This document shows, piece after piece, positions 2,431 through 64,000 of a stretch of 64,000 nucleotides of DNA. A program made the translations under genes and the position numbers. The DNA is taken from contig CDRNST010000015.1 in assembly GCA_977016875.1 (NCBI GenBank), positions 2,604,001 through 2,668,000 on the forward strand, given 5' to 3'. The notes below the pieces were generated by a model that was not told the DNA's origin, did no database searches, and saw only the letters and a program-made list of their open reading frames with translations. Numbering within the stretch: position 1 is the stretch's first letter; every line of letters begins with the position of its first letter. The stretch is from Pavona decussata (lineage: Eukaryota).

Positions 2431-4621
2431 CCTACCCCCCTTTCCCTTTGAAGAAGATTGACCACGAAAATATTACCTGCTCAAACTTCGGTAGACACAG
2501 TTATCCAGTTCTTTGCACCTCAATACAAAGGTAAATTAATGCCACGTATAAAAAGGCAATCCCTCTTTGTTCTATAAACAATGAAAAACAGAGGACTAAT
2601 GGAACATTTTAACATACATTTTCATATCGTTAAATGTTCTTCACACGTGCTCACTCCGAATCCAACAGGATAAATTCATTTATCTTGAACGCATGATTTT
2701 CCCTATAGCCTAACCCATCATGCCAAGTAAAGTCAAATAAGAGAGGTGAAGAAAGTAAGAGAATATATTTTTGATATGGCCATGGTTTATGAGATTAACA
2801 AAGCTATGGTGAGCAAAATATTTTCATGGCCTGCCAGACAAATATGACATATTACAACGCATAAGTTAAGAAAAGCTTCAATTATCCTTCCCAGTGTCAA
2901 TGAATAATGTGGACTAGCGTCATCTACCAAAAATACAATGCCATGCACTAACGCTCCATATTCCCTTCTTGTGAAGTCCCAGTTTGATCCTTGTTCGTAA
3001 TTAAAAACTGGAGTGAATGATCCAGGATGACCGCAGATGTAAATAATTCTCTACTTCAAATAATTTTGGCGAGACGTTCAACATATATGTTCAACATATA
3101 TTTTTCGTCTACATGAAAAATCATGTCAAAGAAAACGAATGAAAATAGACACATCAGTGTCAACCCCATTTTTTGAGGATGATTGTTTGAGGTTTAATTT
3201 GGAGGATAACGTGTACCCTTAAAAATATGCTGGATCAAAACGGGCCAATCAAAACATTGCACAGTTTCCTGAGAGGTTTAAGGAAATGCCGCGAAACAAT
3301 TTTCATTCAAGCTACTTATATCTAGGGAAATAGGAGCGTTGAAGAACCACAGGCTACCTCACATGCTTAGGACAAAGGAAAACGACGTATTCGAGTTATC
3401 GCAATAAGGCGTTTTGTTCTTTTCTCATACGCTAAGCGACCGTATGAGGAGAAGAAGATTAACCATGCTCTCATGAAAGGGGGAGCGTACAACCAGCAGT
3501 CATTTCGATCAATTACACTCCGGCTTTCTAGGTTGAATCGTAACAGCGCTTACCCTTTACTGGAGAAGTCGCTCTTTCTGTTACCTTGCTGTACCTTACG
3601 AACTTTCACTAGCTCCTAGTCTCGACGTATCTTTATGCAGTTTGCATAAATCAGATGGTTTTAGTACCATAAGTTACATTGAATTGACATTCAATTTACA
3701 CATATGCATTTTAATTGTTTAGTCGTCTTTAAAAACAGTCATTTTTAAAAGTGGAAATAATATAATAAGGATGAGTCTTTCGGCCAAAAGATATTAACGA
3801 CACTGGAATTGACATTTTAAAAAAGAATTGAGTAGTGAAATTCTAGAGCAGGCGGTTAAAAAAACACAGACATGAGACAGCGACGTGATTAATAAACGAA
3901 GCTTTCTACGAGCTTTAAGATCAACAATGTGTCTACAGTTTCGCATACTAAAGTAATGATACCAAAGAGCCAAAGTACTATTCTGACACTGTGTCAATCA
4001 ATTCAGTAACACATGGTTGTTATGAGGGAGGACAAGATATCCCATGAACAAAGTCTACTACGACACAGGGTTCAACAGTTTGCATTTTTGTAAGGTTATT
4101 TGTGATTAAGAAATAGCTTATAAATACGAAATGACCACTTTAATAATAACAAAAATACCATGCTGATATTTCCTCATATTTAGTCCCTAATCCTTGCTAC
4201 TATATCATAGATGGAACCTCCAACCATTAACGTTAGCCTTTTGCTGTAGTAAGGAAACATTTTAGTAACTGTCCACTTCGTTCTTGATATTTGCAAAGAT
4301 AAGTGTCGTACAGTAGAACATATAACGCGACTGTTGAAAAAAGGGCACTAAGCTGTGTTCTAAACGTCCGCGAGTTCTCACGCGCAAGGAACCTCCCTCC
4401 CCCCCGGCCCCCCCTCCCCAGCTAAGAAACAAAAAACGTTTTTCAAGCTCAGGGAGTGTATATTTGGCTAGACGGCTGGTTTAGGAACTTGAAGAACTAC
4501 ATATTTACAGAGGTAAAATACTGAATTGTTTGTCGTTTGTTACTTGTTCGCCTTCGTTGGGCGTGGGAAGATAGTCAGGTTACCAGATCCCACCCGGTTT
4601 TGATCACGCCTTAGTTTGTCA

Positions 4622-13266: not shown

Positions 13267-14186
13267 TTAGGTTATAGTGTCTGGCAAACCATCAGTAAGG
13301 TACGTTTTAGTGGAACCAGTCAAAGAGGAAATTCTTTTTTGTGCAAGGAACGACTTGTTGAAGCTAGCCTCCATTCTCACGGTGATATCCTTGAATACTT
13401 CGACCGACTCCCCGTGTTCTTCCAGAACGCGTCGCACCAATGCTTTCAGTAGATCGAAGCAGTGAATAAGTTGCCCTGCTCTCACAGGAATATCCATGTC
13501 TCTCAACGCATCTGAGTTTGGTTGCGCAATTTTGAAAGGCTTTTCCAAAGAAGACACAAACTCCGATAACTGGGCTAACGGGAGGTATGTCTTTCCGTCG
13601 TGAACAAACGTTCCCCACGTAATGTAGTAGCTGTCGAAGTTCTCCTTGGTGATGCAGAAATCCTCGATTTCGTGAGCGCGGTTCACGTTCTCAAGAATGA
13701 TAGCAATGTACATGTTAACAATTACAAGGAAGACGACTATGATATAGCTGGCCAAGTAAAGAACAGCACTGAACGAGCCACAGTTACCATTGGGAAGACT
13801 CAGGTAGGTGGGATCGCAATCTGGAGGCTGCAGCATCAACGCATCCATGATGTCATTCCATCCAGAGCCAGTAGCTAGGCGAAACAGCAGCAGAAGTGCA
13901 GTACCAAACGTTTCGAAGTTTACAGTGTCATTTAAATCGCCTTCTCGTTTTACATTTCCGAAAGCTGACATGCCAATGATCGCATAGATAAATATGACCA
14001 TGAATAGCAGGGTGCCAATGTTGAAGAGGGCTGGTAACGAGATCATGAGAGCCCACAAGAGCTGACGTATTCCCTTGGCAAACTCCACCAGCCTTAGCAG
14101 CCTGGCAATTCTGAAGATTCGTAGGACGCGAAGAAGACTGGGACTAACTGCACCTTCGTTTGCATTGAATTCGTCGAGCATCACAT
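13267..14186 (-). CDS. Nav2: Nav2 exon 23: DIV S4-S6, pore loop, C-terminus
   Basis: tcaatag|AT GTG ATG; [16 protein letters not shown]; [11 protein letters not shown]; [11 protein letters not shown]; stop TAA 13267. Confidence 0.95.
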
Positions 14187-17100
14187 CTATTGAAGCAAAT
14201 CAGAGAGTTAAATTCCTAGTATGGTGGAATTTGAAAGTTTAAATCTTTCACTTCCAAAAGGGGAAAGCAAGAAAAACAATAACATACTTCGTTTTGCATA
14301 TTATCAGGATAAAAAAGGCCGAAACGAATTAAGTTCGGCTTCTGTACAACAACTTTCATCTGAATGGCCACAGAACCACCTAGCTCAGCATGACAAACAG
14401 TACAACAGGATACTATTTCTGAATAGCTTTCATTTGGATCGCCCAACGACTCCAATTTTAGAACGATTTCCACAATAAGCCGTACCATAAGGAACGAGTG
14501 ACTTCCTCTAGATTGTCACTCTTCAGGATTTTATCCACAGGCTCAAAAATCGGAGCCACCTTGTACAGCAATAAACAGACAGAAAATGTTTGTTGAATGC
14601 ATTCATTTGAATGGTAAAACTTTAGCGATACGGTTTCATCCAAGGACTGAAGACTTCAAATACTAAAGAAAATGTCAGTGAAATGGTTCATTGTCGAACA
14701 GGATATCTCTGAAAAGTTAAGTTTTTTTTTTTTTTTTCTACACATTTCTATTCTTACACCAAGTGAACTTTCTGGGTGTTTTTTTGCAAGAAACCAAAAT
14801 AAATGGAAATACCCATTGGAATGAATGTCACAACCTAGTGACGGTTGCCAAAGCCCTTAACCTAAGTTGTTTTAACTAACTGAGAGGTTTTTCGATTGGG
14901 TGTCGCGTAATCAAGATGGCCAAGATGGCGAGATGGTCAACCTTTGCCAAGTTACAATGTAGATGTGCGTGTACAACAGACGTAAACGGCACAACGAAGC
15001 AAGATTCGAAGCAAATGAAAGTAAATGGCGTCACGTCGAGAAAATGCGTGCGAGCAACACACGTTCTTTCAGTTCTAATGTGTAGCCAAAGTGGAGCAAA
15101 TTAATAAACCAGTCAGAGAGAGTAGAAGAGTAACACTCGTTACTAAAAACCGCTCTTTTAACAAGTTTACATACCCACAAGAGAGCTGATAACGATGATG
15201 AAGTCGAACACATTCCATGCTTTCTTGAAATAATGCATCCTCAACGTCATAATCTTGACAATGGCCTCCAACAGAAATATTCCAGTGAAAACGAAATTGC
15301 AAATGCGTGAACATTGGTCAAGGAAGGTTGTAGTTTTTTTTCAATGGATTACATGATTGGTAAAATCTGTATGTATACTGTTTTCATGACAATTGACCTA
15401 TTTTCATGATAAACGGCACAAGGGGTCCTATCAACTTCTCACGCATTTGAACAGGTAAGCATAACATAGTGAAAGGATATGAAGGGCGTCAGTGACTTGT
15501 TCTGATTGTCCGTGATGTTGTATCGTCATCAATACCATGTTGCACATGATTACTGTCAGAATAGCGATCTCAAACTTATCTCCTGTTACCACGTCATATA
15601 ACACGCCACAAAGTCGTTCCTGGAAATCAAACGTTACAGGAAGATCAACTACAATACTCAAGACAGTAATACTACATATGCTAAAAGAACAACAAATGGT
15701 GACTCCACGTTCCAAATTTAGTTGCATTTTCTTGTCCACTTGATTTATGGCAGCTGGACTTATGCTAATGTCAACTGGCTGCCTGGCTCTGCTAGCCCCT
15801 ATGGTTATTCCAGGCAGCCAGTACTCTTCACGAAAATTGTGATAAACAATTCATAAGAAATCTGCCCATTCTGAGCCAGTCACAAGTTTTTCTGTAACTG
15901 TTCATGTGTTGAGTTTCCATGGCAACTATAGAAAACGTGCACGATCAGGTTGGGCTCACATGCACGTTCTCTTAACGCCCGTTTAAACGGTTTCAACGTT
16001 TGACCAACATTCGTTCAACAAAAGTTGAACGGATGTTGGGCAAATGTTGGACAAATGTTGAACGGAGTGTTCAAACGGCTTCAACACCATTCAACATTTT
16101 CGAGAACAAAGCAAATGTTGTATGGATGTTGAATTAAAATTGAAACCGATTGAAATTTGATTCAACACGCTTTCAACAAGCTTTCAACATTTTTTAAGCT
16201 TTCAGCAATGTTGGACGACCTGTTCAAACGCCCCCAACACTTGGTTCAACAAAGTGTTGAACGCGTGTTGAAGAAAATGTTGAAACCCTTGAAATGGGCC
16301 TTTACATACTCATATAAGAAAAAGATTCGCATACAACAAAGTCGGTAATGACATTCCATATCAACGAAAGAATTAATCTCCTTGGTTGTTTTCAGAACCA
16401 TTCTACGTGTTTGTTCATTTTGCAATACTTTGTCAAATTTTTGGTACTCCTGAAGTTTTCCTTTTTTTTTTTATTTAAACATATTTTATTGTCGAAGCTT
16501 GCCCTAAGAGGAAAAAAAAAACTCATCGAGAGGGCTCACTTCGAAATAACATTAAATTGAAAAATCAACATTAAATAATAATTAGTAAAAGCGGCGGCAA
16601 AATTAACAAAAAGCAGCATTAAGCAATGCTAACAGGTGGAAAATACACATCTAGGTACTTTTATAAAATCTCTTCGATTCAGATATAAAAGACTGGACAT
16701 GAAAAAATAGATAATTATTTTGTTTAGGAGAAAGTAACTGTTATCCAAGGCGACAGTTTTGTTACCTGTGTTAGTTTGAGTAACGTAATCTCTTTGTGTC
16801 CCTGAAGAAATAGTGAATTTCAAAATGTTTTTGCTTAGTTCATGTACGGCTTTCTCACAGGCCCTCACAGTCAATTTGTTTCGATGACGTTTCCGAGACG
16901 TACGGCTGGGAAAAGCCTCGCTTTTCCCTCTTACTCGTGACCCAAAACGGATTGATCAAGTTGAAAGACAGAGAAATGCCCAGGAACTAGACAACAAATG
17001 TTTATGATAATAGGGATTGGAGTCTTTGAATTACTTTATACCTGTGGACGAATCTGTCTGGTGGGTGGTTTTTTTCGAGCCGCTTCTTTGAGAAAGTTGA

Positions 17101-31700: not shown

Positions 31701-34076
31701 GGGTGCTCTGTATTTTCTACTACCATAAAATGTAGCTCACTCCGGCCCTTGTATTTCTGGGTTCTTATGATCTGAATTAGACCTAGAAATCAAGGGGTCT
31801 GACGTAAATCTGACCCAGACGGACCTTTAAAAACCAAGCTAGCCATTTTTTCTTTTGGAGTACCGATCCAACCACCTATCAAGAAGGCCTTAATAGGGCT
31901 TAATTGTTTGTTTTTTTGTTGTTGTTGTTTATATTAGGCAAGCTTAATCGTATCAGAGATTTTTTATGAATCATTCTAAGATATTTGAAATATGTTTTTT
32001 TTTATATCCTAGGTAGGTTTCTTCACGAGAATCTAGCAGCACTTTGTCAAAACTGTCCTAAAATAATTACTATAATCCTCCTAAGATCCTAATCTAAGAT
32101 TTTCCTAAGACACCAAGAGGAAAATTTCAAATGAATTTTCATCAAATTCTTGTAGGGAGGGCGAACAACATGGTCTGCGAGAGACCCGGGTACCCGGGCA
32201 ATCCGCCCTCCATGTAAACAGGCCCTTAGCTTTGCGTGATTAGACAGTACTATCAAAAATAGAAAACGTATTCTTCTAAAGTACTAATTTAAACAGTTTA
32301 CTTACTCAGCCTCATCCGGTGCACATTCAACCACGAGAAACACACAGTTGGCTAAGATGGTGAGGATAACAAAGGACTCAAAATATCTGCACTCAAATTT
32401 AAGGACCAATAGCTGCAGATTCATTGTCATTTTCATTCGCTTTTTTGTATAGCGACAACGTAACAAAGCCTACGTTTTTCCCAACCGTCACCACATCCCG
32501 GCCAGCCATCCGAGAAACACTGGGAAGGCGCTTAGCGGGAGGAGGTAGCCAAATGTGTTTTTGCATCGAAACCTTCGCGTAGGGATTAGACATTCAAGGT
32601 TGTGAAGAGATCGCAAACTTTCATAAATGCCATTTCGTTTCATAAAAATTCTAGTTCGACAAAATTTAACTACCAGGCGTTTTGGCACAGTATCTCATGT
32701 TTTCGTCTCATTTTTCTTTTACTTTCTTTCTTTAAAAAATAAAGAAGAAACGGAGGAGACGTCAAACTGCATGAGCATGAATAAAATGCCTACGCTCTAT
32801 ATTTGGACGGCTAACATGATATGATTTGTGAGAAAGTGAGAAAACACTTATGATCCTTTTTTGATATAGCCCAACTATGACCCTCTAACCTGACCTAAAA
32901 CTTAAATAAGAATAGTAAGCAGTGTACCAAAAGACTGATAACACATCATTTCTGGCCAGTGAGCATAGGCCCCTGTTGCAATTTCAAAGGATACCGATTT
33001 GTTACGACGCTGATCGCAAACTGCCTGACGGGACTGAGGGGCTCCAGCAGACCCAATGAGGGGGCCTTGTTGAATCTGTAAACGTGATCAGAACGTGCAT
33101 TCCCTCGACGACGAACCACGAGAAATGTATGATTGCAAGGAACCTTAAAAAGATAATAAAATTCGGTGAACCTTCCACTTGAAAGAAAAGCACATCCATG
33201 CCACAAGGAGGAAGCAGGCCTTGTTTCGTTTACACGTTAACTTACTCTGTTTCTTCAACACGAAGCAATTAGGAGTGCTGCTGCTTCTACTACAAGCAGT
33301 TGGAAAAAGGTTGATACACTCTCGCGAAAAAACAAATTTCTCCCATATTACACAATAATATCTTGTTGAAAACACATGCTCAAGGGTTTAACCATACTGA
33401 ATCACGGAATCGCACAACATTGATTATTGGGGGGAGGGTAGGCAAGGTCGACTTGTATACTGAGACTGTTATTCTTTTTCAATATACGTGCAGCACATCC
33501 TTGAATTACTCGGAGCATGTTGTTAGTTTTTCCTCACGATTTGCTGTTAACAGGAGCCCATGACCCGAAGCCTAGTCCTTCATCGTACTTTTCCTTGGAA
33601 CCAATCCTTTCCCGAGTAGATTTAATTTTAGAACGGGTCTCAGGGGACCTTTGGAACGCCTACAGTTCAAATACCCAATCAAAGAACAACAATGGCAATT
33701 CCAGGGAAAGCAGTTTTAAAAATAAATCTACCCCGGAAAGGATTCATTCAAGTAATTAATACAGATGGAGATTACCTGAGTCTGGAGCCCTGTTGGTAAC
33801 CATTTATTTAATGAAAACCATTTAGCACGCCATTTGGGTTGAGAGGGACTATAGTGTTAAAATGAGTTAATCCCTGATATACCCTTGTATTTGTGTGGAT
33901 TAATTTTCTAGTGACTGTTTTCAAGTTGTTCAGTGGAATATTTCACTTACCCTTCCCATGCCCGCGTCAAAATCTACCAGCGGTTTTCCAATAAAGTAGG
34001 AAGGCATCCGAGCCACTTTGGGACCTTTAGGCTCTTCATCCATGACCACTTCCGGGTCCTCGCTTTCTCCCTCCAT
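13267..34076 (-). CDS. Nav2: Voltage-gated sodium channel alpha subunit, Nav2 type (four domains); 23 coding exons, ~1590 aa from ATG 34076
   Basis: Exons in transcription order: 33951-34076, 32995-33143, 32306-32386, 31396-31524, 31072-31163, 30145-30342, 29557-29614, 28585-28729, 27620-27757, 26476-26907, 25271-25444, 24076-24423, 22952-23249, 21649-22001, 20658-20831, 19842-19952, 18925-19194, 18125-18178, 17599-17736, 17042-17155, 15481-15619, 15175-15306, 13267-14186. Total 4773 nt, all phases compatible, no internal stop. Four S4 segments; pore loops TMDYWE, CGEWIE, TFEGWM, TGSGWND. The true start may lie further upstream. Confidence 0.96.
15175..15306 (-). CDS. Nav2: Nav2 exon 22: DIV S2-S3
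   Basis: (R)[43 protein letters not shown]; AC acceptor, gtatgt donor. Confidence 0.92.
15307..15480 (-). other. U12-type AT-AC intron
   Basis: 5' splice site ATATCCTTT; branch TTCCTTGAC ~12 nt upstream of a terminal AC; removal gives in-frame DALRICNFVF. Confidence 0.93.
15481..15619 (-). CDS. Nav2: Nav2 exon 21: DIV S1
   Basis: [46 protein letters not shown]. Confidence 0.92.
15975..16301. mobile_element. Harbinger-like MITE in Nav2 intron 20
   Basis: Imperfect TIR acgcccgtttaaacggtttcaac / gttgaaacccttgaaatgggcct; TTA TSD; internal gttgaa/ttcaac subrepeats. Confidence 0.7.
17042..17155 (-). CDS. Nav2: Nav2 exon 20: DIII-DIV linker (inactivation gate)
   Basis: [38 protein letters not shown]; canonical splice sites. 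Confidence 0.92.
17599..17736 (-). CDS. Nav2: Nav2 exon 19: DIII S6
   Basis: [46 protein letters not shown]. Confidence 0.95.
18125..18178 (-). CDS. Nav2: Nav2 exon 18: DIII pore loop (54 nt)
   Basis: [18 protein letters not shown] between ag and gtaa. Confidence 0.93.
18925..19194 (-). CDS. Nav2: Nav2 exon 17: DIII S5 and turret
   Basis: [42 protein letters not shown]...[14 protein letters not shown]. Confidence 0.95.
19842..19952 (-). CDS. Nav2: Nav2 exon 16: DIII S3-S4
   Basis: [37 protein letters not shown]. Confidence 0.95.
20658..20831 (-). CDS. Nav2: Nav2 exon 15: DIII S2-S3
   Basis: [12 protein letters not shown]...[31 protein letters not shown]. Confidence 0.95.
20939..21120. mobile_element. 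piggyBac-like MITE (same family as 30694-30897 and about 43797-43978)
   Basis: ttaaccct...gatcactgttagggcttaaaggg; reverse-complement match to 30694-30897. Confidence 0.65.
21208..21536. mobile_element. TTAA-flanked TIR element (Kolobok-like MITE)
   Basis: ttaa-aggaaagctctactctt ... aagagtggaggttgcc-ttaa, imperfect TIR. Confidence 0.5.
21649..22001 (-). CDS. Nav2: Nav2 exon 14: DII-III linker end and DIII S1
   Basis: ...DDCLPEYC...[32 protein letters not shown]. Confidence 0.93.
22952..23249 (-). CDS. Nav2: Nav2 exon 13: DII S6 end and DII-III linker
   Basis: [13 protein letters not shown]...YDIPCK; phase-1 donor gttagc. Confidence 0.9.
24076..24423 (-). CDS. Nav2: Nav2 exon 12: DII S4 end, S5, pore, S6
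   Basis: [13 protein letters not shown]...[31 protein letters not shown]...GNFI. Confidence 0.95.
25271..25444 (-). CDS. Nav2: Nav2 exon 11: DII S2-S4
   Basis: [14 protein letters not shown]...WNVFD...[10 protein letters not shown]. Confidence 0.95.
26476..26907 (-). CDS. Nav2: Nav2 exon 10: DI-II linker and DII S1
   Basis: [15 protein letters not shown]...[23 protein letters not shown]...DYVNL. Confidence 0.9.
27620..27757 (-). CDS. Nav2: Nav2 exon 9: DI S6
   Basis: [46 protein letters not shown]. Confidence 0.93.
28585..28729 (-). CDS. Nav2: Nav2 exon 8: DI pore loop
   Basis: SCPSNYTC...[34 protein letters not shown]. Confidence 0.95.
29557..29614 (-). CDS. Nav2: Nav2 exon 7: DI turret
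   Basis: [19 protein letters not shown]. Confidence 0.92.
30145..30342 (-). CDS. Nav2: Nav2 exon 6: DI S5
   Basis: [22 protein letters not shown]...[15 protein letters not shown]. Confidence 0.95.
30694..30897. mobile_element. piggyBac-like MITE in Nav2 intron 5
   Basis: TTAA|ccctttaagccctaa ... ttagggttaaaggg|TTAA. Confidence 0.8.
31072..31163 (-). CDS. Nav2: Nav2 exon 5: DI S3-S4 (92 nt)
   Basis: [30 protein letters not shown]. Confidence 0.95.
31396..31524 (-). CDS. Nav2: Nav2 exon 4: DI S2-S3
   Basis: [43 protein letters not shown]. Confidence 0.95.
32306..32386 (-). CDS. Nav2: Nav2 exon 3: DI S1
   Basis: [27 protein letters not shown]. Confidence 0.93.
32387..32994 (-). other. U12-type GT-AG intron
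   Basis: 5' splice site GTATCCTTT; branch-like GTCCTTAAA ~11 nt before the 3' AG; no polypyrimidine tract. Confidence 0.9.
32995..33143 (-). CDS. Nav2: Nav2 exon 2: N-terminal domain
   Basis: [13 protein letters not shown]...[29 protein letters not shown]. Confidence 0.9.
33951..34076 (-). CDS. Nav2: Nav2 exon 1 (first identifiable coding exon; reading frame stays open up to 34217)
   Basis: [11 protein letters not shown]...[20 protein letters not shown]|gtaagt, matching the Nav N-terminal P-x(5,6)-PLEDxD motif. Confidence 0.8.
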
Positions 34077-35369
34077 TTCTATGTCTTCAGTGTCAAACCG
34101 AACCCTTTTTGATGAAGATTCTTCACCTCTCAAAGTAACTGCCTTTTCCTTTTCAGTAGTCCCCTTAATCAGGGTATTTTTGGGATTTTTCCCTGTAATC
34201 GGATTGGAAAGTAGCTCTCAGAAAGAAAGCCTCTGATATGGATCGATGGTAAACATCACGCTGTTAGTATACTGTTAATCAAACGTACATTTTCCCCTAC
34301 TGATGAAACGTTCTTAAATGAATCCAGTCTGGTCATTATTGACTAGTTTCGGGATAAGGGGCTAAACACGATTTGCAATAGCTTTTGCAGCTATGTACGC
34401 AACTTGCGTGAACTTCCTTTCAAGTTTCAGGCTTTCTTGCAGAAAGAAAGGAATTTCAAACCACTACGTCTACGATATCGGTACATCGCTCTGCTGGGAT
34501 CGGAGCTGGTCAATTTATGAATTCCTATTATACTCGTAGAAAAGAAGAGATGAAACGATGAATTTCATAGATTTCACCTCCGATTAAAAATTAGTATCAC
34601 AAACACTGCAAGTGTGAACAAACTTGAAAATCTACAGTAATGAGGTGAGAAATATCAGAGCTACATCATTATTTCTAAAATCGTGTCATGCAGATAGGCA
34701 AGGGAAACTAACAGCCGTCACACTTGACCGAATATATCCTCTTTCCTATGGACTGAGTTCTGACTTGATCAATTAAGTGTCCAGCATTATCAATGTTATC
34801 TGATCACCAATCTATAATCGAGCCTAAAAATGTACTAAGAACATGTAAAGAAAGAAAACTTAAAGAGGAAACCTAGGATAGAGAGAAGAACTGAAGCCGT
34901 TACGTAATAAAAATTAATGTGACTGAAACCACATTTCATGTTAAAGCAAAAAAAAAAAAGAAAGAAAAAAAAAAAGAAAAGAAAAAAATCCAACCTGTTA
35001 GTCATCACAGTGAAGAAATATAGTTGCTTATTTGACTGAGCAAGATGTTCGGGGTTAATTCACTTTTTAACCGCTCAATCGCGAAGTTCATCACGTGTCG
35101 AAACATTCAAAGATTCCAGTATCAGGAAAACACACCGAAAGGAAACGAGGATTTTTTCGTAGATGTATTCTATAAACCATTGAATAGACGTTGAACATTT
35201 TGTACAAGTCTGAATATTTGAAAACAAAACAGTATAAATGTTCAGTACTTAGAGTAACTGAAACCATCTGAAGCGAGCTCAATACTCCAACAACAGCAAA
35301 ACAAAAACTTCACTTCATAGCTTTGATGTCTGCCGATAGTCACAGCACGCGCACGATTTCCATTAGCCG

Positions 35370-35622
35370 AATTAAAATCTGGTACCAAAAAAATAATCTG
35401 AAGGTGAGAAAATTTGTAACGAGAACCTGAAACTTCATTAGTGAAGAGGTAAGACAAATATGAGCCATGTTTCATAACTTTCATGTATGCCGTACGATTT
35501 CCATGAATTAAAATTTGGTACCAAAAAAATAATCGGAAAGTGAGAATAATTTTAACGAGACGCTGAAACTTAATTACTGAAGAAGTAAGACAAATCTGAG
35601 CCATATTTTCCCTAACTCATGT
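35370..35622. repeat. Two-copy ~136-bp tandem duplication
   Basis: aattaaaat.tggtaccaaaaaaataatc...gtaagacaaat.tgagccat at 35370 and 35506. Confidence 0.85.
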
Positions 35623-38154
35623 CATGTAGATAGACAAGTGAAATTAACAGCCTGCATAACTGCGGTACAAGCCCTTTATATCATCTGAATTTGTAAATAA
35701 ATTGTTGTAAATAAATAAATTGTTGGGGCGCCCTAATATCTATGGACTTCTGTACTATTTGACCGATTTGGTGCAATTATCACTGTTAACTGCTCACGAG
35801 TCTAAATTCGAGCCTAGACATGTCCTAAGCATTTTCAATAGATACCTTTAGATGCAAGTATGCGTACGAATACGACTATTAAATTTTTCAATAGAGAAAG
35901 AGCGCGCGCGCGTGGACAAGTGTCATTTTGGCGGCAAACCGGATAGCCTTCATCATTTTACCACGAGTTTGTGTGACAACGGCGTAGTGGCGAAAACAGT
36001 CCTCGAAAGGTAGACGTTCTCGTCTTTTTGAAATCACGAAAGGGATTAGCTATCATCGTTCAAAACAAAAAACTTCGTCAAGTTCGTCCGTTACAAAGAG
36101 TAAAATCAAGCTTCCTGGATGTATTTATACCTTCTTAGACTTCTTAGTACTTCGCTAAACACTTCAAGTCAAATCTCATGTTCGTAGTCGTACTTGTACT
36201 AGAATCTAAATGTCTCTAATTAAGACCGTGTAAAGGACAAACTCACAAAGGCAAAAAAGGATAGAGAATCTGAAGCTGTTACGTAATTAAAACTTACTAA
36301 AACTCACGTGACTGAAATCCCTCAAGAGTTGTCTGAATGCTCAATTGAAAGTAATGCTCAGTGAAGAAGCAATTGTTTCATTTCATTACAGGAAAAAATG
36401 CGTCTAATCTTTTAGTCAAGACCGTGTGGCACAATTGATGACTTAACTGAACAAGCCGTTCGAGCTAAATTCAGTATTCAACGGTTCAATCACGAGTATC
36501 TCACGTGCGTAAATGTGCGAATAGTCATTATGAAACACACCTGAAAGGAAAAAGGGATTTTTTTCATAGCAATATTACATGTATTATTAAATTTTAACGC
36601 TATAGGCGTGAAACGTAAGTATAAGACTTATATTTGAAGTCAAAACACATTATCAATGTCAAGTAAAAAATTGTTTGGCACCGCTTTATCGCTTGTTATG
36701 GCGTGTGGAAAAGGATTAAGGAGTATTAATTATCCAAACAGGAAAACGGTCAAGAGAAGGATCCAAAAGTTTCCATCTCTTCAATAAATGGGGTGAAATT
36801 CCTTTACCACTGAAATTTTAAAAAGTGTAAACTTGAATTTGAAAATTTTTAGGAAAGCCTACTACGCCACCATAATTATTCAGTCAGGACAAATTTTCCA
36901 CGTTAGTAATGAAACAAAGTTTAGAGGAAAAGAACGCACAATTCAAATAGCAATTAATATCAACATCAATATTTCTGAAATCATATCAAACAGATTGACC
37001 GGAGAAATTAAGAGCCAGTATATCCAATCGAATGCGCCCTAAAGTTATTATCCATGTATAGGACTTGATTGATTTAGGGCAAACGGTATACAATCGGCAA
37101 TAAACATGTCCAAAGCAATTTCGATTAAAAACATGTGAAGGAAAAACTATAACAACGCAAACTTGGATACAGGGAAGAATCTGAAGCTATTACGTAATTA
37201 AAACTTCAAAGTCACGTGACTGAATTCACCCAACTTAGTCGTGTTAATACTAATTTGAAACGAACGCGAACTGTCCTCTGTTAAGTGATAATAATCTGAT
37301 TTCATTTATAGCAGAAAGAGAAGTTGAATGTGTTAGCTAGTAAACACAGTAAAGCATAAGCGATTACATAACTACTGATTCAGATATTCAAATGTTCAAG
37401 CACGAGTTTTTTTCAAGTGCCTGAATATATTACGAGTAGTTACAATGAAACAGGCCTGAAAGGATTGCTTTAAGGAAGTATTTTATTCATTATTAAACTT
37501 ATAGGCATCAAACTTTAAGTGCGATACTAACATTTGAAATCAATGTCAAGTCCACAAAATTAAATATCCCAATTATTATAGGAAATTACCGAAAGCTTGA
37601 AATTTTACGGAAATCTATTCTACTGTCAGTATAATGGACCCAAGACAAGTATCTGACATTTCTGCTCGGGCAAAACGTTTATAGGAAAAGAACGAAAGTC
37701 TGAAATAGTGATAAGTTGAATTTATTAATACCTGACGAGCCAAACCATTATTTCTGAAATCTCGTCACGCAGACAGACAACAGAAACTAAGCGCCGGCAT
37801 AGATGGACCCGCTGACTGCCAGGTCAGGCAGGCAGACAGACAGACAGAATGACAGACAATTCATTTTGAGGGACCTTGAGCAGCGACAACGACGACGGCG
37901 CCAACGAGAACTTTAGAAAACAATAGTTCTCATTAGCAAAACACTACCCCTACACTTGCGTTATACAATTTGGTACGTTTCGTTGCCGTCCTCTGAAAAA
38001 ACAACAGAGAGCTTAAGCAACCGTGACAACGGCAACGAAAGCGTTACTTGAAAATATTACTTCATTTTATTTGTGCTACGACGAGAAGAGAGAAATATAC
38101 AAAAATTCAAAACGCACGTGCAGAACGATTGTTTTTGCTCATTAAACCTATTGT

Positions 38155-38301
38155 TCCTCGCGAAGCGAGGTTAATAAATTTGTCGGGCCGAGCCGGCCCG
38201 AGCGGAGCTAAGCCGCGCGAATTCGAGCGAAAGATATAATTATATATATGCGTTATTGACCAAGCGTGAGGTCAAGATGGCTGGATATTGGCCAAGTTCG
38301 T

Positions 38302-38348
<47 letters not shown>

Positions 38349-38355
38349 CAAAAAA

Positions 38356-38390
<35 letters not shown>

Positions 38391-39266
38391 AAGCTTGGTC
38401 AATAAAGGATTTATTATATGGCTTTACCTTCAAGTTAAAACTACGACAACAAAACAAAACAGGACATGAAACTGCTCTACTCGGAAAGAAATTCTTCATA
38501 GCCGGCCGGTGCAAGCCGGATTTATTTTTAGTGCATTTTTGGATTAGCATGTAATCGTGGAAAACAAGGAATCCTAAATTATCTTAGGATTAAGATTTTC
38601 GCAAGAGCGGGAAGATTTGAATCGAATCCGTCAAACTCTCCATTTTAGCCGATCGCGCGGTGGCGTAAATAATAAACATTTTTACACAGTTTTCGGCTTC
38701 CAATCATTAATTCTTGAATGAAACAATAGATTTTGAGATTATATGCAAACATAAGCCGAAAAAAAAAACGGGTGAATCAGAAAACTGGGCGAAACTTTGA
38801 CAAGATTTTGTTGTTTACAACAAGCAAGGCGCGGCTAAATTAGAAACGTGAGCTTCTTCGGCGAACTTGAAAAAAATACTTTTCTGAACTGCTCTAAACA
38901 CTCAACGCAACTTCCATTACGCTATGATTTAAATACAACCATTGCAAACCTATAGAACTTATCAATTTGGCACTCGACTTGAGACCATAAGTTTTACAAA
39001 ATCAACTCTATCTAAAATACTACACGCAGAGCAACTCACCGATTCAACTCACATTCATTGTAGCTGAAACAAAATTTTCACTACACTAGGACGATTCCAT
39101 TCTCTTTCCTTTCCTTTAGGTAAATGTTGAGAGAGTTTACCGAACTTTTTAGTGAGCGTTTACCCCCAAAACAACGAGAAAATCGAAGAAAAGATTGCAT
39201 TGTTGTTGGGATTAAACTTTCGAAGCCAAGCGGACGGGCAACGGGTAATCCCGAGCGGGCAAGATA

Positions 39267-39297
<31 letters not shown>

Positions 39298-39863
39298 CAG
39301 CGCAGGATTTGACTCATCTTGCCCGCTCGCGGAGCCAGCCATATAATAAATATGGTTATATCTTTGAAGGTGTCCGCACTTGTGCCTAGCAACAGTGAAA
39401 AACAAAGTATGAATGACGTCAGCCTGTCTGGCGTCGTCTGGAGCAAAATTTGCATACATCGGAAAAAAATATGCGTGCATGATCAAATTTCAACTGCAAT
39501 GTTCATCAATATTCACTGGATACAAAACTATCTCTCCAGAATCTTTTCCCTTACTTTTAGAAATCTTTTTTGTGAAAGATTGCATTGAAGAAATTACACG
39601 TTTTGTGACCGCGGTAAAATTATTTTCCGTGGGAAATAAATTCATCGAGCACGACAGCGCTGCACGCCCGTTGTACATTACGTCACGTCAGAAATAGATC
39701 AGTTTCAACCGCAAACTAGCCCGTGGAACTACGAAAAGACCATACTCATCAAAAAAAAATCCTATGCACCTTTTAATCTCCTCATTTGATGCTACAATAC
39801 GAGAAAAGAGGGCTTTCCACCCAGCCCCAGCTTCGCGAGGTTTTGCGAGTCACGTATTTCTAG
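38155..39863 (+). mobile_element. Non-autonomous Helitron/Helentron-like element
   Basis: Starts tcctcgcgaagcgagg, has the inverted subterminal copy gcttcgcgagg (39830-39840), ends CTAG followed by TTTT, no TSD. The 3' terminus recurs reverse-complemented at about 17852-17900. Confidence 0.55.
38240..39350 (+). mobile_element. Hairpin-headed non-autonomous repeat (family B)
   Basis: ~150-bp 5' hairpin (38255-38405) capped by GA-GAC-GAA-GTC-GA; second hairpin 39249-39288; AGCCAATCA at 39289; tttattata / tataataaa inverted pair. Confidence 0.75.
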
Positions 39864-42800
39864 TTTTACGGTGTTGTCGTTGCCGTCGCCGTCGTCGTTG
39901 CTTACAAGTCCTGAGCAGTTTCAATTATGGACATGTGAAGGAGAAACTTACAAACGCAAACTACGATAGGGAGAAGCTACTGAAGCTGTTGCGTAATAAA
40001 GATGTATCAACGTCACGTGACTCAAACCACTCAACTAAGTTGCAGTCATTTAATTTTATACCAGAAAAAAGAAGACTCGAAGCAACACGGTATCGAATGG
40101 TTCATGACCACGCTATATGCGAAGAAACGAAACTTGGAGAAGTTATCATTTGAGCATTATAAAGCAGAAAATAGAGCCATATCTATTGATCAACACAGCG
40201 TAGCATAGATGATGACGTAAATGAAAAGGCTGGTCGGTGAGATCGTTTGATCACGAATTTAATCACTGCCTAAATATGCGAAGTGTCAAAATTAAAAACA
40301 AAGAAAGGACTCGAGGATTTTTTTTGTAAAAATATCCTATCAAATGTTACCAGACGAAAGGCGAGGAACGTTAATATATAGTCTGATCTTTGAAAGTCAA
40401 AACAAAAAATAAATACTCAGCACAGTTGCATTTCATTCGCGTTTATAAAACAGTGGAATAAAAGCCCAAGAAAACTGTCTGAAATTGTTTTCAGCAAGAC
40501 CAATTCCCGTACATTGAAAGAGGTTGTATCACAGTTTTGCAGCTGTGGTGCATGAAAATTACTAGGCAAAAATACGAAAGTACGATTTCTTTTGGCGATT
40601 AAAAATTGCCTATCACAAACTACTGAACGTGTGAGCATAGGAACGACAGCTGAGAACGATGAAGAACTCGTACTATTCAACGCTTGTTTTTGGTAACAAA
40701 TTTATTCGGCAAGAAGCTTTAAGGAACAAATTGTTAGGACAACAAAGAAATAAATCGTTCAATGACAAACTCAAACGATAAAATACCTCCAATAACAAGT
40801 AATCGTACCACTTAAAGTGTTGTTCCTTATAATTTTTGTCGCAGCGTAAAACTAAGCAGCGATCAATTTGACCTACAATTAATTCGTCTGAATTCAGTAG
40901 GTTCACACGAAAAAAAATTAAAAATTCAAGTTGACGGTTCAAAGGCAGAAGTTTCGCCACATTGATGCACTACGAGCAATTGAATCAGTGAAGTACAAAC
41001 TGATCTGAATATGAATAACAAAATAAACCTCGTTAGAAGTCCGATGCCAATAAAAACACAACATGGAACACTCACAATGTTTGCATAGGAAGTGACAGCT
41101 TAAGAAGTAATATAAGTACTATTTTAAGCACAGTCATGTGAGACAAGCAATATAGGCTTGGATAATATATAGTAGCCGACGTTAATTTATGCAGACAATT
41201 GTAAATTGTTTGCGATGAATTTTGAGATTGCTTGAGAGAAAAAGAAAGCATTGGCGTTGACAAGAACTTGGAGAGCCATATGATTAGTATAGAAAAAATC
41301 TCGAGAGATTTCCTCGCGGGAAATGCTGCTATTTTTTGTGAATCGCAGCAATACATTTTACATTAAAGCGATCTGTAATTCCTCAATATTAACGATAATT
41401 TTAATCTTACAGATTTATATTTTAAACTCATGAAGATACCATTATGTTTAATAGTCATTATGTGCTAATTCGGCAAAAGCGAGAAATTAAAACGAGACGA
41501 ATTATCAAACCTGATCTCGCCAAGACAGTGATTACAAGAACGGAAACAAACTAGGTGTTAATTTATCGTGACAGCGAAAAAATCTACAATCAAACCAGAC
41601 TGAACGGAGGCCATGTTAACTAACATAAAGAGTGATTTACAGTAAAAATAGTAAGATTCAGTGAAAAAAATTGTCGAGTCGTTCTCAGATTTAGTCAATA
41701 GGTTGTTAAGTTATTTCTAGAGAGTCTATGCAGCATGCAGACGCGGTTTGTTTGCGGTGTGTTTGTTTTCAAATTTTAAAATTTCATAAAGAAAACCTTC
41801 ATGTACTTATAGCTTCACACCTGGTGGTAAACGTTCTTGAAGACCTCATTCATCCTGCTACGAAGCTACAATCAGCAGCACCGGGCACCATACAACGTCT
41901 ATTTGGATTAGCAACTTTCGATTGCTGATAGCAGATAACTATTCACATTATTACGAAATGTCCGCCGTATAATTCAATAGACTGATGCGTGAGAACTTCC
42001 CGTTTTCATCATAATCATAACTTATTTAACAGCCTTTTAGGTTACGGTAACCAATCACAGTTACAACAGTGTGTTTTGGGGGTTTAAAAATGTCAATAAA
42101 TGCGTAGATTGTATGAGGCGCCAACACACGATTTTCTTTGTGTCAATCACTGATGACTTTTGCTTGTTTGATTTAGTTGTTTGTGTCAACCAGGCACCTC
42201 TGAGGGTGACAAATAAATTACTTTTCTCGATACTTGGTGTTTTCCGTTTACTTTAAGTTTTAGTGCATTGATTTGAAACATCTCAAGGTGCTCTCTTTTG
42301 GCAAAGGTTTGGTTTATTGCATCGTTTCTCTAAAAGTCAGATAAAAGGCTTTATTATTGAGAAACATTTAAGGATACTGCACTTTTAAATAAAATCATTT
42401 CGAACTCTTTCACATATCTCTCTTCCTAAATATTTAAATAATTCGACAGTTTGATTTAATGCTTGGTATCCAGAAAAAAGAAGCTCTTTCGGGGTAGAAT
42501 TTTGTTAGAATACTCCTTACATGTCTCAACAACCATAGGTAACATTTATTGTACGATAAAACATAGACCGTTTTTCGCTTACATAACAATTTTCACTTTC
42601 AACCGGTTGTAGATGAACGGTAACGAATTTTACAACTGAATTGAGTTTGAAGGAAATTGATGAAACCGAAAACAAATTGTGTCAAATTTAGCGTTGCAAA
42701 TTTCGACAAATTACGTGAGAGGAGCTTATTCAGCTGCGATTATTAAAATTTCCACTATTACATACACGCAGGTTGAAGGATACAAACCCCATTGTTATCC

Positions 42801-43229
42801 AATGTTTAAAATTCTAAAACCAAAAGCAAAATAATTCTGTGAACAATACAAACCTATTATAGAGCTTTTCACGAACATGATGGCAGAGGACGGAAACAAA
42901 ATCCTTTAGTTTGTTTCCTCAGTGATGACCAGTCTGAATAAATCAACTTTACCAACGGTTTATGAAAGATTGAAGCAACGTTTGAAGAAAGAAAAGTTCG
43001 TTCAACTCTCCACGCCTTCTACCTGCTTGCGGGCTCATAACTTATTGATGCAAGCAGGGTATTGAGTATCTTATCAAAGCATTAGTACTATTTTATAACT
43101 TAGTATCCTCCCCTTCGTCTCTGACGTTTATCCTCAGGAATGCCATTGTACACATTTAAATTGCTTTCGAAAATTTCTCATTTCAAAACAAATATGAGAG
43201 CACTGGAATGGGCTGCTCAACTGAGAACC

Positions 43230-49108: not shown

Positions 49109-52003
49109 TAAATAAATAAAGGAAAAGGTACAGATTCCGACAACGCCGATTTGTATGTCGAGCAACTAGCGTTAGGACTGCAGCTTACATATTGGTTTAT
49201 CCCTAAACAGAACGGTAAATCCAATTTTCAATCGCAAAATCCCACATTTCCAGATTGGATTAATAGACAGTTACTACGCACTAATATTCGACCGCGAATG
49301 TGATCTGTTCTGAGAAGCGAGCGGGACAAATATTCAAACATATTTTCAAACTCAAATAAGAGTTACTTCGTTTTTCACCCTTCAAACATTTTACTCACAG
49401 AAAACCGCGCTGGTAGGATGGTTTTTCGACATTTTTTTTATCGAAAAGTATATTAATCCATCGCTTTAGTCTGCATGGTAGAGCAGCAAAACTTTCTTCT
49501 TCTTGGAGCTTTCAAAGAATTTTTCGTTGTATTGAGGCGAACTAAAAATATCATTTGAATATTTCTCAGCTTTACTGATGGATGACAAAATTACCTTCTG
49601 TTATGACTGGGTTGAATCAGAACATATATCTTGCTTTAATAAGGGCAGCTGAGTGTCTGAATTACTCAAGGCGTCGTAGGGCTATTGTGAAAATTTTTCA
49701 GTAACCTGTAACTTTCTGTCTTACTCTATTTTATTTTATTTTTTTAGGCGTTAGACGTTTAAAAAGTTACTTTGTCTACATCATGACTTCACAAACGTAA
49801 TTGTTATTTTTTCTGAGAAGAATGCTATCTCCTCACTCAAGATTTTAAAAGCCTGCTGCGATCTCCAGCCAATATAATCAAAATTTCAGTTATAATGCTG
49901 TTTACTTATAAGGATTTGATAGCACATTACAAAACCAAAATTGACTTTGACTTATCCTTAGCCCCTCAGAGCAGAAAAAAGTTCCATTATTTAAGGCGAA
50001 CGGTGGTCTCCGAGAGTTCACCAGCGTTACGACACTCAATCTCGGGCAGTTTTGTTTCAAATTCTCGTACGCTCTCGGTGACTTTGTTGTATTCACATCG
50101 TACTGATAAAAGCTGCGAAAATTTTCTATGAGAATAGGGGCGGACAATTATTTATTTCCGTAAACAAGACGTATCCTCGACAAAGCTCTCATCCTGGTTT
50201 AATAGCTGGTCTGCAGATAACCATTGAGAAGTGAAAACATTCTCATCCAACTCTATGCATTCCTCATCCATGCCCGAGCAACTTTACGCGACAGCTGATA
50301 CAAGAACGGCACATTTTACCTTGAATAAAATATTACTTTGCGGTTTTTGAGTTTAAATAACCGCGACCAGGTGAAAGCAGAAAGTTATGATATACCGAAG
50401 TGCCAATCAACATTCTTAAAAACTTAATGGAATTGCAATTCAAGCCGCTTTTTCGCTGTAACGAGTTTGCGACGCGCCGAGATGCCGTTGAATATTTAAT
50501 GCAACAAATGATATGACACGATACGATAAACACCATATCCCCACAACGAAAACAGAGCCATGGTAAATAATGATTTTTGAGCTCGTTTCGTTCGGTACGG
50601 TTTCTCTTCTAAAGCCCAGAACTAAATATAGTTCGTGTTGGATTTTCCGGCAACGAACAAACACGAAATGACGCCAATATTCAGCGCACTTGCGCCATGA
50701 CCTATCATTGGTTGAAAAATTTCTCTTTACCTTGAGCAACTTGTTTCGAGACCGCAAATAATTTTCCAAGTCAACACCTAGCGCTGAAATCTATTTTAGC
50801 GGGCACGGGGTAATACAAATAAGAATTAAGAGATGGCATGAAATTCATTTAGCTCAAACTCAGACGAATGGTAAAGGCAACAAGAATCACCGACAACTGG
50901 CGATTTTTGTGTTCGATTTTGACCCACCGTGGATCGCTTGTTACAGGTACGAAGTGACAAGATTGTTTGTTTTGTTTTTTTTTTTCATTTCATGTTGCAG
51001 TTCAGTTAAAAAGGCAACAAAACCTAAGTTTTAGTGATTCGGAATGATAACTCCTCTTGGAAGACCCAACACACCTTTAGATCGTTTAGAAGGGCGTTTT
51101 TGAATTGTCTGCTACAAAACCCTTTTGCAAAATGCCTATAATTCCCTGAACCTAGAGTGTCAGGGATAAAATCTATTTCCCGGGATTTTTAACCTTTTGA
51201 CCGCGTGACAAACTATTACTTAAATCATACTTCTGATATCATCGAACGTACGAAATTTCCAGTATCTCCGCAATCGGCGGTATTTCATTTTGCGAAAGCG
51301 AAAATCGCAGAAAAAAGAAAATTGCTTTTTAAGATTGAACGAGAGATTTCATCATAGTATCTCCACTTCTTGTGATAATCCCGCACTTAAGCACAATTCC
51401 TCGTTTGCAAAATTATATCTTAAACATATTAATATTTATCTCCGTCACTGAGAGCTTTGGATAGGATGGAAAAATGATTTGAAAGTTTTTACCTTGGCTC
51501 CCCCAATTGTGTTAATCAACCGCTAATTGCGTTCTCTTACAGATTAATTTGTTTCGTTTCATTCATTTTTCGTTCCCCGCCTGAGTAAATGTCATCGAGA
51601 GAAACCCAATTCTAACGACTTTTAACCTATCAACAAAAACCTTAGTCATTTTTAAAATAAATAACCCAAAGTTCCACTTTGTCACCTAAACAAACCAATT
51701 TCACTTCGTTAAATGTCTCCACCTTCCACGTACTGAACTTGATTACGGACTTGAGCAAAAGTTTTACGTTTCATCGCCAATTGCTGGAATTTCAGTTTAA
51801 AGAATGTAGAAGTGCCGAGTCAGTTTCTACTCAGAACAGTCTGAAAGCAGCAGGGATAAAAAAGACTCCGTGTTTTAAAAACCTCGTGATACAACTGTAC
51901 AACTGAACACTGAAACAACTATTTCTTTAAATGGCTAAATACCTGCACTGTTCGATATTTTTATTTTTTCACTCATTGTTTTATGCATCTCTTTAAACTA
52001 CAG

Positions 52004-61700: not shown

Positions 61701-62808
61701 ATTCGCTGATTATACTCCATTGGATTGGAGTTTACAAATAAAATGATACAGACGTCGAAATGTTAATGACTGAATTTTATGAACCACGCAAAAATAAACA
61801 TCTTATCAGTATAGTTTGAGACTTGAAGGCAAAAGAGTGTATCCATCTTTATGTCTACTTTGACAAAAAATTGTAACATTGTTACATGCGCCTCACCTGT
61901 AGTGGTCAAGTCCGCGAAGATCGATCAAGGACTTACAGTTTTCCTTTTGTTATTGAAAGAGTAGCATTATGTAAAAAAAACATGACATGTTTTGGTTGTG
62001 CCAGTCTTGGATATAGCATCGCAATCGCTTGAAATAATATTAAACTTTCTTTGGAAATCTCAACAAAGGGATTTCTTAAATTCTGATCTTAACTCTTCAA
62101 TACCAGATGTTTAAAGGCTATGAAATTTTAAATCCTTTGACAAAAAAACTTATTCTTTTTTGAAAGCGTCTTAATTAATTTTTCTGAGTATCTGTCAAGC
62201 TTAGCTTAATAACAATCTCCAATTCACACCAGGAAATTAAAACAATACAAGGGATCTAAATTTCAATTTATTACGACCTTGACCGAAAATACCGGGTTTT
62301 GTAGAGTACGTTTTAAATTATGTTTTGACGAGACTAGGCGGGAAAATTCATGTCCACTATCTCCGAAAATAAATAAAAAATGAGGTGTTTATAATATCGT
62401 CGCGACAGGAGGCCTAGTAATTTTCTCGCGCTTCTCAAGTTTTGTAATGAATAGAAAAAAATATAACCCACGGGAAATCTCGCTAGGCAAACATAAGTTA
62501 ATTTTAAAAGTTGACTTCAACTAAACTCGTGGACGTACATGGCAATATCTTAATAAGAAAATATATCAATCGTGCCTTTTTTAAAAAAGGGCTATGTCAT
62601 CGGGATTTTTAAGTTTTTTTAACAAAATTGTGCTAAAATTAAAACTAAGTACCTTTTTTGTTCACAAAACGTTCCCAGAAAGATATATAGATACTGTAAG
62701 CGGAAAGTTCGATCCTCGTCCTGTCCCTCCCTTCTTCCTCTCCTCATCCTCCTCCCTCCCCCACCCCCATCCCCCACACACACACCACACACACCCACTC
62801 ACACTTAA

Positions 62809-63173: not shown

Positions 63174-63366
63174 TTAAGTTCCAAACCAAAGCTGATAGGA
63201 GCATCAAGTGGTAACATAGTCTGGCCAAAGTTTTGTTCTATTACTTACATTAAAGCCTCTAGGTCCCCACGATGAACAGCGTTAACATATGTTACATCTA
63301 TTAAAATATCCTCAGATGCTGCTTGTTTTGCCTTAAAACTTGGATCAGCATTTGTATCCTAGAAAG

Positions 63367-63639
63367 ATGCTTAGAGATGGTGAAGACGATTCTTCCTTCG
63401 CAGGAGATAACGTCGATGAAAAAATGGTACCAAGCCCTCGAAGGCGGAAAAAGGTTGTGACATTTGCCAGCTTGGCGGAATTATCCGAGATACAAGCTCT
63501 GGCAACATGTGAAACTGATTCGCAGTCGTCAGAGATTTGCAAAACTTCTTGCTCTGACGAGACAAACCTACAAGCTTTACAAGACCCGAGCCTGTTCTTG
63601 AACATGCCGCTGGAGGATTATGACGTCACGGAAGGCAAC
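63367..63639 (+). CDS. Probable first coding exon of a second, divergently transcribed Nav2-type channel paralog
   Basis: aagATG start; MLRDGEDD...RRRKKVVTF...QDPSLFLNMPLEDYDVTEGN|gtgagt. Aligns without gaps to [18 protein letters not shown]|gtaagt of the minus-strand Nav2, with the same phase-0 donor. Upstream acceptor cctcag ends at 63315. Confidence 0.7.
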
Positions 63640-64000
63640 GTGAGTACCGTTGAACGTAAAAACTGTAAATGTTTGTTTCAGAAGCTAAGATGTCATTTAA
63701 AATCAAACGCATCTAAGTTTTAAAAAAGGAAATGAATTTTCAAAGTATCAAGATTTTGCCAAAAGTTCTGGATAGCAGCAAGCAAGTTATAAGGTTGAGA
63801 AAAAAGACAACAGTTTTAATTTTTAAATACATGTTTCGCCAGCTCTTCTGTCGTCTTCAGTTTTAAATAGTTAAGTACAAAGTTGAATTTATAATAAGTA
63901 CATAGAAATGTTAACGCTTATTCTGTTTTTACTTGCTATTCAAGAGAAAATAAGGGGACAGAGAGGGAGATCCCCAGTATAGCCCTTGGGACATGTTAAT

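Follow-up and report, generated by a model that had tools for sequence, protein, structure and literature searches.

Does the open reading frame (ORF) near the end of this window, the 64,000-nt stretch of the Pavona decussata genome analysed here (G000:C15:2604001–2668000), belong to a second voltage-gated channel gene, and what might the short basic motif near its N-terminus do? The ORF lies on the plus strand at 63340–63723 and has 127 codons, with its first ATG at 63367. An earlier, sequence-only reading held that it hides a splice donor at 63640, that it starts a paralog lying head to head with a channel gene on the minus strand, and that both N-termini carry an RVxF motif through which the channels could recruit protein phosphatase 1 (PP1) directly. 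To follow the plus strand past position 64000 we added 80 kb of downstream DNA, numbered as extended coordinates. The exons of both genes were searched singly, and the profile, tree and fold work used individual exons rather than joined spliced models.

The internal donor is present as described. It is a phase-0 GTGAGT (63640–63645) directly after the codon for N91, and the corresponding acceptor lies at extended 64333/64334. Exon 1 of this gene, here termed P-type, runs from the ATG at 63367 to 63639 (91 codons), has an in-frame stop just upstream, and contains a PLEDYD box, an N-terminal motif of the Nav family, at 63607–63624. The exon occurs once in the genome. Residues 1–94 of Oculina P0153 match it with an E value of 1e-26 (tblastn), and Porites lobata P0156 is 67% identical to it. 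Within the first intron, at 63750–63915, lies an interspersed repeat of ∼150 bp with a MITE-like look; it has more than 50 genome copies at 72–90% identity, several of them arranged as close inverted pairs.

Channel exons were expected on the plus strand past 64000, namely a TFxV...RF exon, a U12-type intron and DI-S1, and all three are there, with the exon series continuing to extended 84050. Comparison of stop-to-stop pieces of the minus strand with the downstream 80 kb gave colinear plus-strand matches from extended 64265 to 84017. Each of them has its counterpart in one of the minus-gene exons (33218 to 13303), with 43–80% amino-acid identity. Exon 2 (extended 64334–64485) encodes VPADDTFLVL…FRFNKA…SVVTN and ends at CA/GTATCCTTT; DI-S1 is in the exon that follows. 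The part of the gene beyond the window spans extended 64334–84050 (G000:C15:2668334–2688050). Two full-length coral orthologs align to the gene over 1419–1426 of ∼1550 residues, and the alignment terminates at a stop at extended 84050. Within the ortholog matches there are only two stops, both in one exon's match, which we read as overrun of the alignment into an intron.

It could be argued that the ORF represents an orphan gene without splicing or a pseudogene stump, since it runs on past the donor to a stop at 63723. The tail after 63640, however, has no homolog, the GTGAGT donor is retained in P. lobata, and the exon 1/2 junction is identical to that in the P-type ortholog protein models, RefSeq (XP_) models of Montipora and Oculina. 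Downstream on the same strand, the channel exons follow in complete and colinear order, with the two stops confined to one exon's match. We consider the orphan or pseudogene explanation scarcely credible and identify 63367–63639, from these sequence comparisons, as the first exon of a complete and intact second four-domain voltage-gated cation channel gene, the predicted splice junctions of which rest on orthology with the models of other corals.

The minus-strand gene (M-type) requires an amended model, as its first coding exon had been missed. This mini-exon (42854–42878, minus strand) comprises the eight codons of MFVKSSII plus one base and is followed by a GTTTGT donor. Its peptide corresponds to MFVKSSLIG, with which the orthologs of Oculina, Montipora and Acropora begin, and P. 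lobata carries the same mini-exon at position 3701 of the orthologous region, L017 (CALNXK010000065.1:889942–931141). Exon 2 (33951–34192, minus strand) has a cag/GG acceptor at 34193/34192 and a phase-0 GTAAGT donor at 33950, and encodes KRVRF (34109–34095) followed by a PLVDFD box. No in-frame ATG precedes KRVRF within this exon. Because the exon opens at an acceptor, without an ATG, and because the mini-exon matches the ortholog starts, KRVRF is assigned to the coding part of exon 2. The coding start at 42878–42854 likewise makes 34193–42853 intron 1 rather than upstream DNA. Exon 3 (32995–33146, minus strand) contains the TFLVV...YRFN box and ends CG/GTATCCTTT, with a U12-type donor at 32994. 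The last exon (13270–14190, minus strand) encodes DIV S4–S6 and the C-terminal domain, matches Pfam Ion_trans with an E value of 7.5e-39, and is 68% identical to the last exon of the plus gene. The public M-type model of P. lobata (2026 aa) omits the mini-exon at 3701 and also matches GDA1_CD39, which suggests that it is fused with a neighboring gene.

Exon 2 of the M-type gene also offers a second possible start. Six codons past KRVRF there is an in-frame ATG (34074–34076, minus strand), flanked by G at positions −3 and +4. Isoform X2 of Acropora millepora (P0361) begins at the homologous methionine, and motif-less isoforms starting at that methionine are found among the RefSeq models of A. 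millepora, A. muricata and A. palmata. It is plausible that initiation at 34074–34076 could yield a short M-type isoform without the RVxF motif.

The two genes resemble one another in structure as well as in sequence. As the sequence-only reading had noted, the peptide encoded at 34004–33951 on the minus strand aligns without gaps to exon 1 of the plus gene. The alignment covers 18 residues with eight identities (BLOSUM62 score 43, equalled by 6 of 2000 shuffles), and both peptides end at the donor of a phase-0 intron (GTGAGT on the plus strand, GTAAGT on the minus strand). In both genes the TFxV...RF exon is followed by a GTATCCTTT donor, and the intron ends in AG with a branch-site-like TTTCTTGAC or TCCTTAA 12–14 nt before it. 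By these donors, AG ends and branch-site-like elements, we classify both introns as U12-type GT-AG. The vertebrate SCN (Nav1) genes have a similar arrangement, in which a PLEDxD box closes the first coding exon, the TFxV...RF exon comes next, and a U12-type intron follows. The coral genes share this order, but their U12-type intron is GT-AG whereas that of SCN is AT-AC.

The start codons at 42878 (minus strand) and 63367 (plus strand) lie 20.5 kb apart, with the 5′ ends of the genes facing each other. The pair had been thought to share ∼29 kb of upstream DNA; that figure was too large because the minus-strand mini-exon at 42878–42854 had been overlooked. The region between the start codons (42879–63366) contains no ORF of at least 120 aa and no Rfam family. 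P. lobata has the same divergent layout with a gap of 11.4 kb between the genes: in L017, the minus strand carries the mini-exon (3701) and the RVxF exon (1404–1700) of the M-type gene, and the plus strand carries P-type exon 1, which lies at ∼15262. In Oculina the M and P genes bear consecutive locus tags. The colinear channel exons on the plus strand and the conserved layout bear out the proposal of an inverted duplicate pair, and from the sequences we regard the two genes as head-to-head tandem duplicates. In Oculina patagonica, P0386/P0153 and P0387/P0394 carry locus tags G040984/G040985 and G040981/G040982, respectively; the second neighboring M/P pair could reflect another round of duplication or a duplicate created in the assembly.

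Five blocks of the intergenic DNA (43018–43049, 50280–50376, 50687–50855, 51465–51745 and 62091–62293) are conserved with P. lobata at 69–97% identity, with order and orientation kept. These blocks could contain promoters or 5′ UTR exons of the divergent pair, or enhancers that serve both genes. The P. lobata segment L017:31300–41200, where an LBR/ERG24-like gene is called downstream of the P-type gene, shows no similarity to the covered DNA downstream of the plus gene, and its sole match fell in intron 1 of the minus gene. The public P-type model of P. lobata has a 44-residue N-terminal extension that is found in no other ortholog. The gene pair itself is ordinary, and orthologs of both genes have already been annotated in other corals.

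To which channels do the two genes belong? Searching representative proteins with the last exon returned only N-terminally truncated or distant proteins, and the N-terminus of the Oculina M-type, used in a region search, gave three proteins only; orthologs with N-termini were gathered by word searches seeded with the Nematostella match and then aligned. In a FastTree phylogeny, in which each window gene is represented by its last exon, the minus gene groups with the M-type corals (Oculina, Montipora and Acropora) and the plus gene with the P-type corals (Porites, Montipora, Oculina, Pocillopora and Desmophyllum). Support is 97 for a sister relation between the coral M and P groups and 99 for the placement of Nematostella and Actinia outside them. 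This topology places the duplication on the stony-coral stem, before the split of complex and robust corals and, in this sampling, after the split from anemones.

The 90% cluster of the Nematostella protein P0151 includes the cloned NvNav2.2 (AEX00071.1; Gur Barzilai et al. 2012, PMC3809514), and the channel falls in the same clade (support 99) as both coral genes. Pfam Ion_trans (PF00520) matches on exons of both genes, together with colinear alignment to full-length coral orthologs, mark out four Ion_trans repeats in each. The pore segments MDYWEN, CGEWIEP, TFEGW and TGSGWND are present in both window genes and give a D-E-E-S ring without lysine; DEES is listed for Nav2 (PMC6259924). P0383, a member of the cluster that is named Nav2.2, has T at the DIV pore position, which fits the published DEET filter of NvNav2.2 (PMC3809514). 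Judged by tree and sequence, both window genes are co-orthologs of NvNav2.2. They have in common with it a Ca2+-type D-E-E-x pore and an N-terminal layout, which in the anemone protein includes KRVTF. They differ from it in the fourth pore residue (T in NvNav2.2, S in both window genes) and in copy number, corals having two copies, M and P, that stand head to head. In the coral P-type, by contrast with NvNav2.2, the ancestral mini-exon start is gone and a conserved helix has been added behind the motif.

Both motifs named in the sequence-only reading are where it placed them within the two N-termini: RKKVVTF at 63445–63465 on the plus strand, with its K-V-V-T-F core at 63451–63465, and KRVRF at 34109–34095 on the minus strand. 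Their spacing from the box was given as 30–40 residues; counted from the motif F to the P of PL[EV]D, this holds for the minus gene (37) but not for the plus gene (47). Conservation across anthozoan orthologs had also been predicted. Among the Scleractinia and Actiniaria sampled, all clade members whose models include an N-terminus (10 of 10), and both window genes as well, fit the strict five-position RVxF pattern, although these counts are not independent events, as relatives share ancestry. The same pattern is found in 0 of 135 other four-domain channels examined and in none of ∼24 other cnidarian Nav2 N-termini, and no RVxF occurs in any Nav1 N-terminus examined, unlike the coral Nav2.2-type channels. 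When the two window N-termini are shuffled with their composition kept, chance matches to the strict pattern appear in 0.3% and 0.9% of cases.

Alignment shows how narrow the conserved part is. In the 12 aligned N-termini, which come from anemones and both coral clades, the V and F of the motif are invariant in all 12 and are the sole invariants in the ∼70 columns that precede PSxF…PLxDxD; the basic residue two positions before V is nearly so. The looser pattern [RK]-x(0,1)-[VI]-{P}-[FW] fits all 13 sequences examined. Two variants help to define the limits of the motif. P. lobata M-type has PRVRF, which keeps R-V-x-F and fails the strict five-position pattern; P-type proteins have V, not K/R, before the motif V, and fit a spaced or Meiselbach-type pattern, not [KR][KR][VI]x[FW]. 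Within the P-type, the 11 residues RRRKKVVTFAS are invariant in six corals. Relative to P. lobata, the P-type motif region shows six synonymous third-position changes against two replacements, one of L by M and one of S by A, which places the constraint on the protein. KRVTF is encoded in the cloned cDNA of NvNav2.2, which shows transcription of the motif in one species at least. These comparisons identify the N-terminal K/R-x-V-x-F as a feature inherited from the common ancestor of sea anemones and corals, held invariant while its flanks diverged.

The surroundings of the motif differ between the paralogs. When exon 1 of the plus gene is modelled with AF2 (pTM 0.23), the motif is extended and is followed by a helix at 36–46 in an otherwise unfolded chain; this helix, the only notable one in the model, is the conserved P-type segment after the motif (ASLxxLAEIQALA). 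The model is compatible with a motif that would lie in an accessible disordered segment, for which the cytosolic side is inferred from Nav topology. Upstream of the motif, Nematostella has SIIK ∼25 residues before RVxF, and in coral M-types the string is S-[LI]-I-G-K, which spans the junction of exons 1 and 2 and lies ∼25–30 residues before RVxF; these strings were taken from the N-termini of P0151/P0383, P0154, P0155 and P0160 and from window positions 42854–42878. None is exact to the SILK motif as published, G/S-I/V-L/V-K N-terminal to RVxF (PMC9813921), and P-type N-termini have nothing SILK-like before RVxF. A SILK-like string followed by RVxF in Nematostella and the M-types recalls the layout of KNL1.

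The RVxF consensus of PP1-interacting proteins is [K/R][K/R][V/I]x[F/W] or a spaced form, and S/T at x is a known site at which phosphorylation blocks PP1 binding (PMC6715587, PMC10454571). Known examples include KNL1, with SILK and RVSF, and CD2BP2/GEXP15, with KKVQF (PMC6715587, PMC10454571). The coral channels share with these interactors the basic-V-x-F core, here in a stretch modelled as largely unfolded, and the basic residues before it, as well as acidic residues after it in the M-type; like the interactors with S/T at x, the P-type and Nematostella proteins have Thr there. They differ in that the carrier is a four-domain voltage-gated channel and in that docking is predicted from sequence. 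A gene for the PP1 catalytic subunit is present in this genome; for one exon the score is 178 bits with human PP1, compared with 107 bits for PP2A. Two PP1-like N-terminal exons with identical scores lie 18 kb apart (G000:C12:1085839–1085952 and 1103918–1104031) and probably belong to phosphatase genes duplicated in tandem. C318 carries a further PP1-type gene, and C215 one that has diverged more. A full-text search of open-access papers found none linking RVxF to voltage-gated sodium channels.

The motif admits three readings, one of which is that it has no function at all and that the N-termini are alike by ancestry alone. Related sequences do have features in common by descent, and loose RVxF patterns turn up in 4–15% of shuffled N-termini. 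That account is hard to square, however, with V and F kept in 12 of 12 sequences while the flanks have almost fully diverged, with synonymous substitutions inside the conserved codons, and with the lack of strict matches in the 135 other channel N-termini; we regard coincidence as very improbable. The block is very likely a functional short linear motif, to judge from this pattern of conservation.

What such a motif would bind is a harder matter. RVxF-like strings are common, many conserved ones serve other roles, and the RRRKK run resembles other basic signals. The K-x-V-x-F could be a genuine, selected motif with a ligand or role other than PP1, such as a signal for trafficking or for ER retention/export that uses the basic run, a basic patch of the lipid or importin type, a site for a basophilic kinase, or a point of contact with an auxiliary protein or with a different domain of the channel. 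Conservation by itself names no ligand, and in the P-type the conserved block reaches past RVxF into the helix (ASLxxLAEIQALA), which suggests a larger interface. Against this, what stays invariant across the three groups is the pair of V and F anchors with the basic residue, that is, the RVxF signature, and neither the M-type nor the anemone proteins share the P-type's basic run, Thr or helix. (The anemone protein keeps its own Thr at x, as noted above.) We see a non-PP1 role as possible but somewhat doubtful, and PP1 itself as the ligand at roughly even odds. The reading that we favor, by a little over an even chance, is that of a head-to-head pair of NvNav2.2 co-orthologs whose inherited N-terminal motif would act as a docking site for the PP1 catalytic subunit.

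If PP1 docks in this way, the V and F of the motif would insert into the RVxF groove of the catalytic subunit, and the channel would tether its own phosphatase, so that phosphosites on the channel or its partners might be kept dephosphorylated. The paralogs could then be regulated differently. In the plus-strand protein, the Thr at x after the basic run (RRRKK-VV-T-F) would give a kinase a means of turning docking off, as happens in other RV[S/T]F motifs; the minus-strand gene, through its alternative start just after the motif, could yield a motif-less isoform. The broader proposal that hexacorallian Nav2.2-type channels serve as their own PP1-targeting subunits, tuned by Thr phosphorylation (RVTF/VVTF) and by start-codon choice, is one that we advance tentatively, and we would place it a little short of even.

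What is new, within the searchable literature, is that one Nav2 subfamily carries at its N-terminus a deeply conserved motif that fits the RVxF consensus. To our knowledge, almost nothing is known about how cnidarian Nav2 channels are regulated. As NvNav2.2 has previously been cloned and expressed in oocytes (PMC3809514), the motif is a cheap and immediate lead for the bench, a sound one even while the mechanism remains a proposal. If the proposal is true, it would equip an early-branching, Ca2+-permeable lineage of 'sodium channels' with a kinase/phosphatase switch of its own, one older than the split between anemones and corals.
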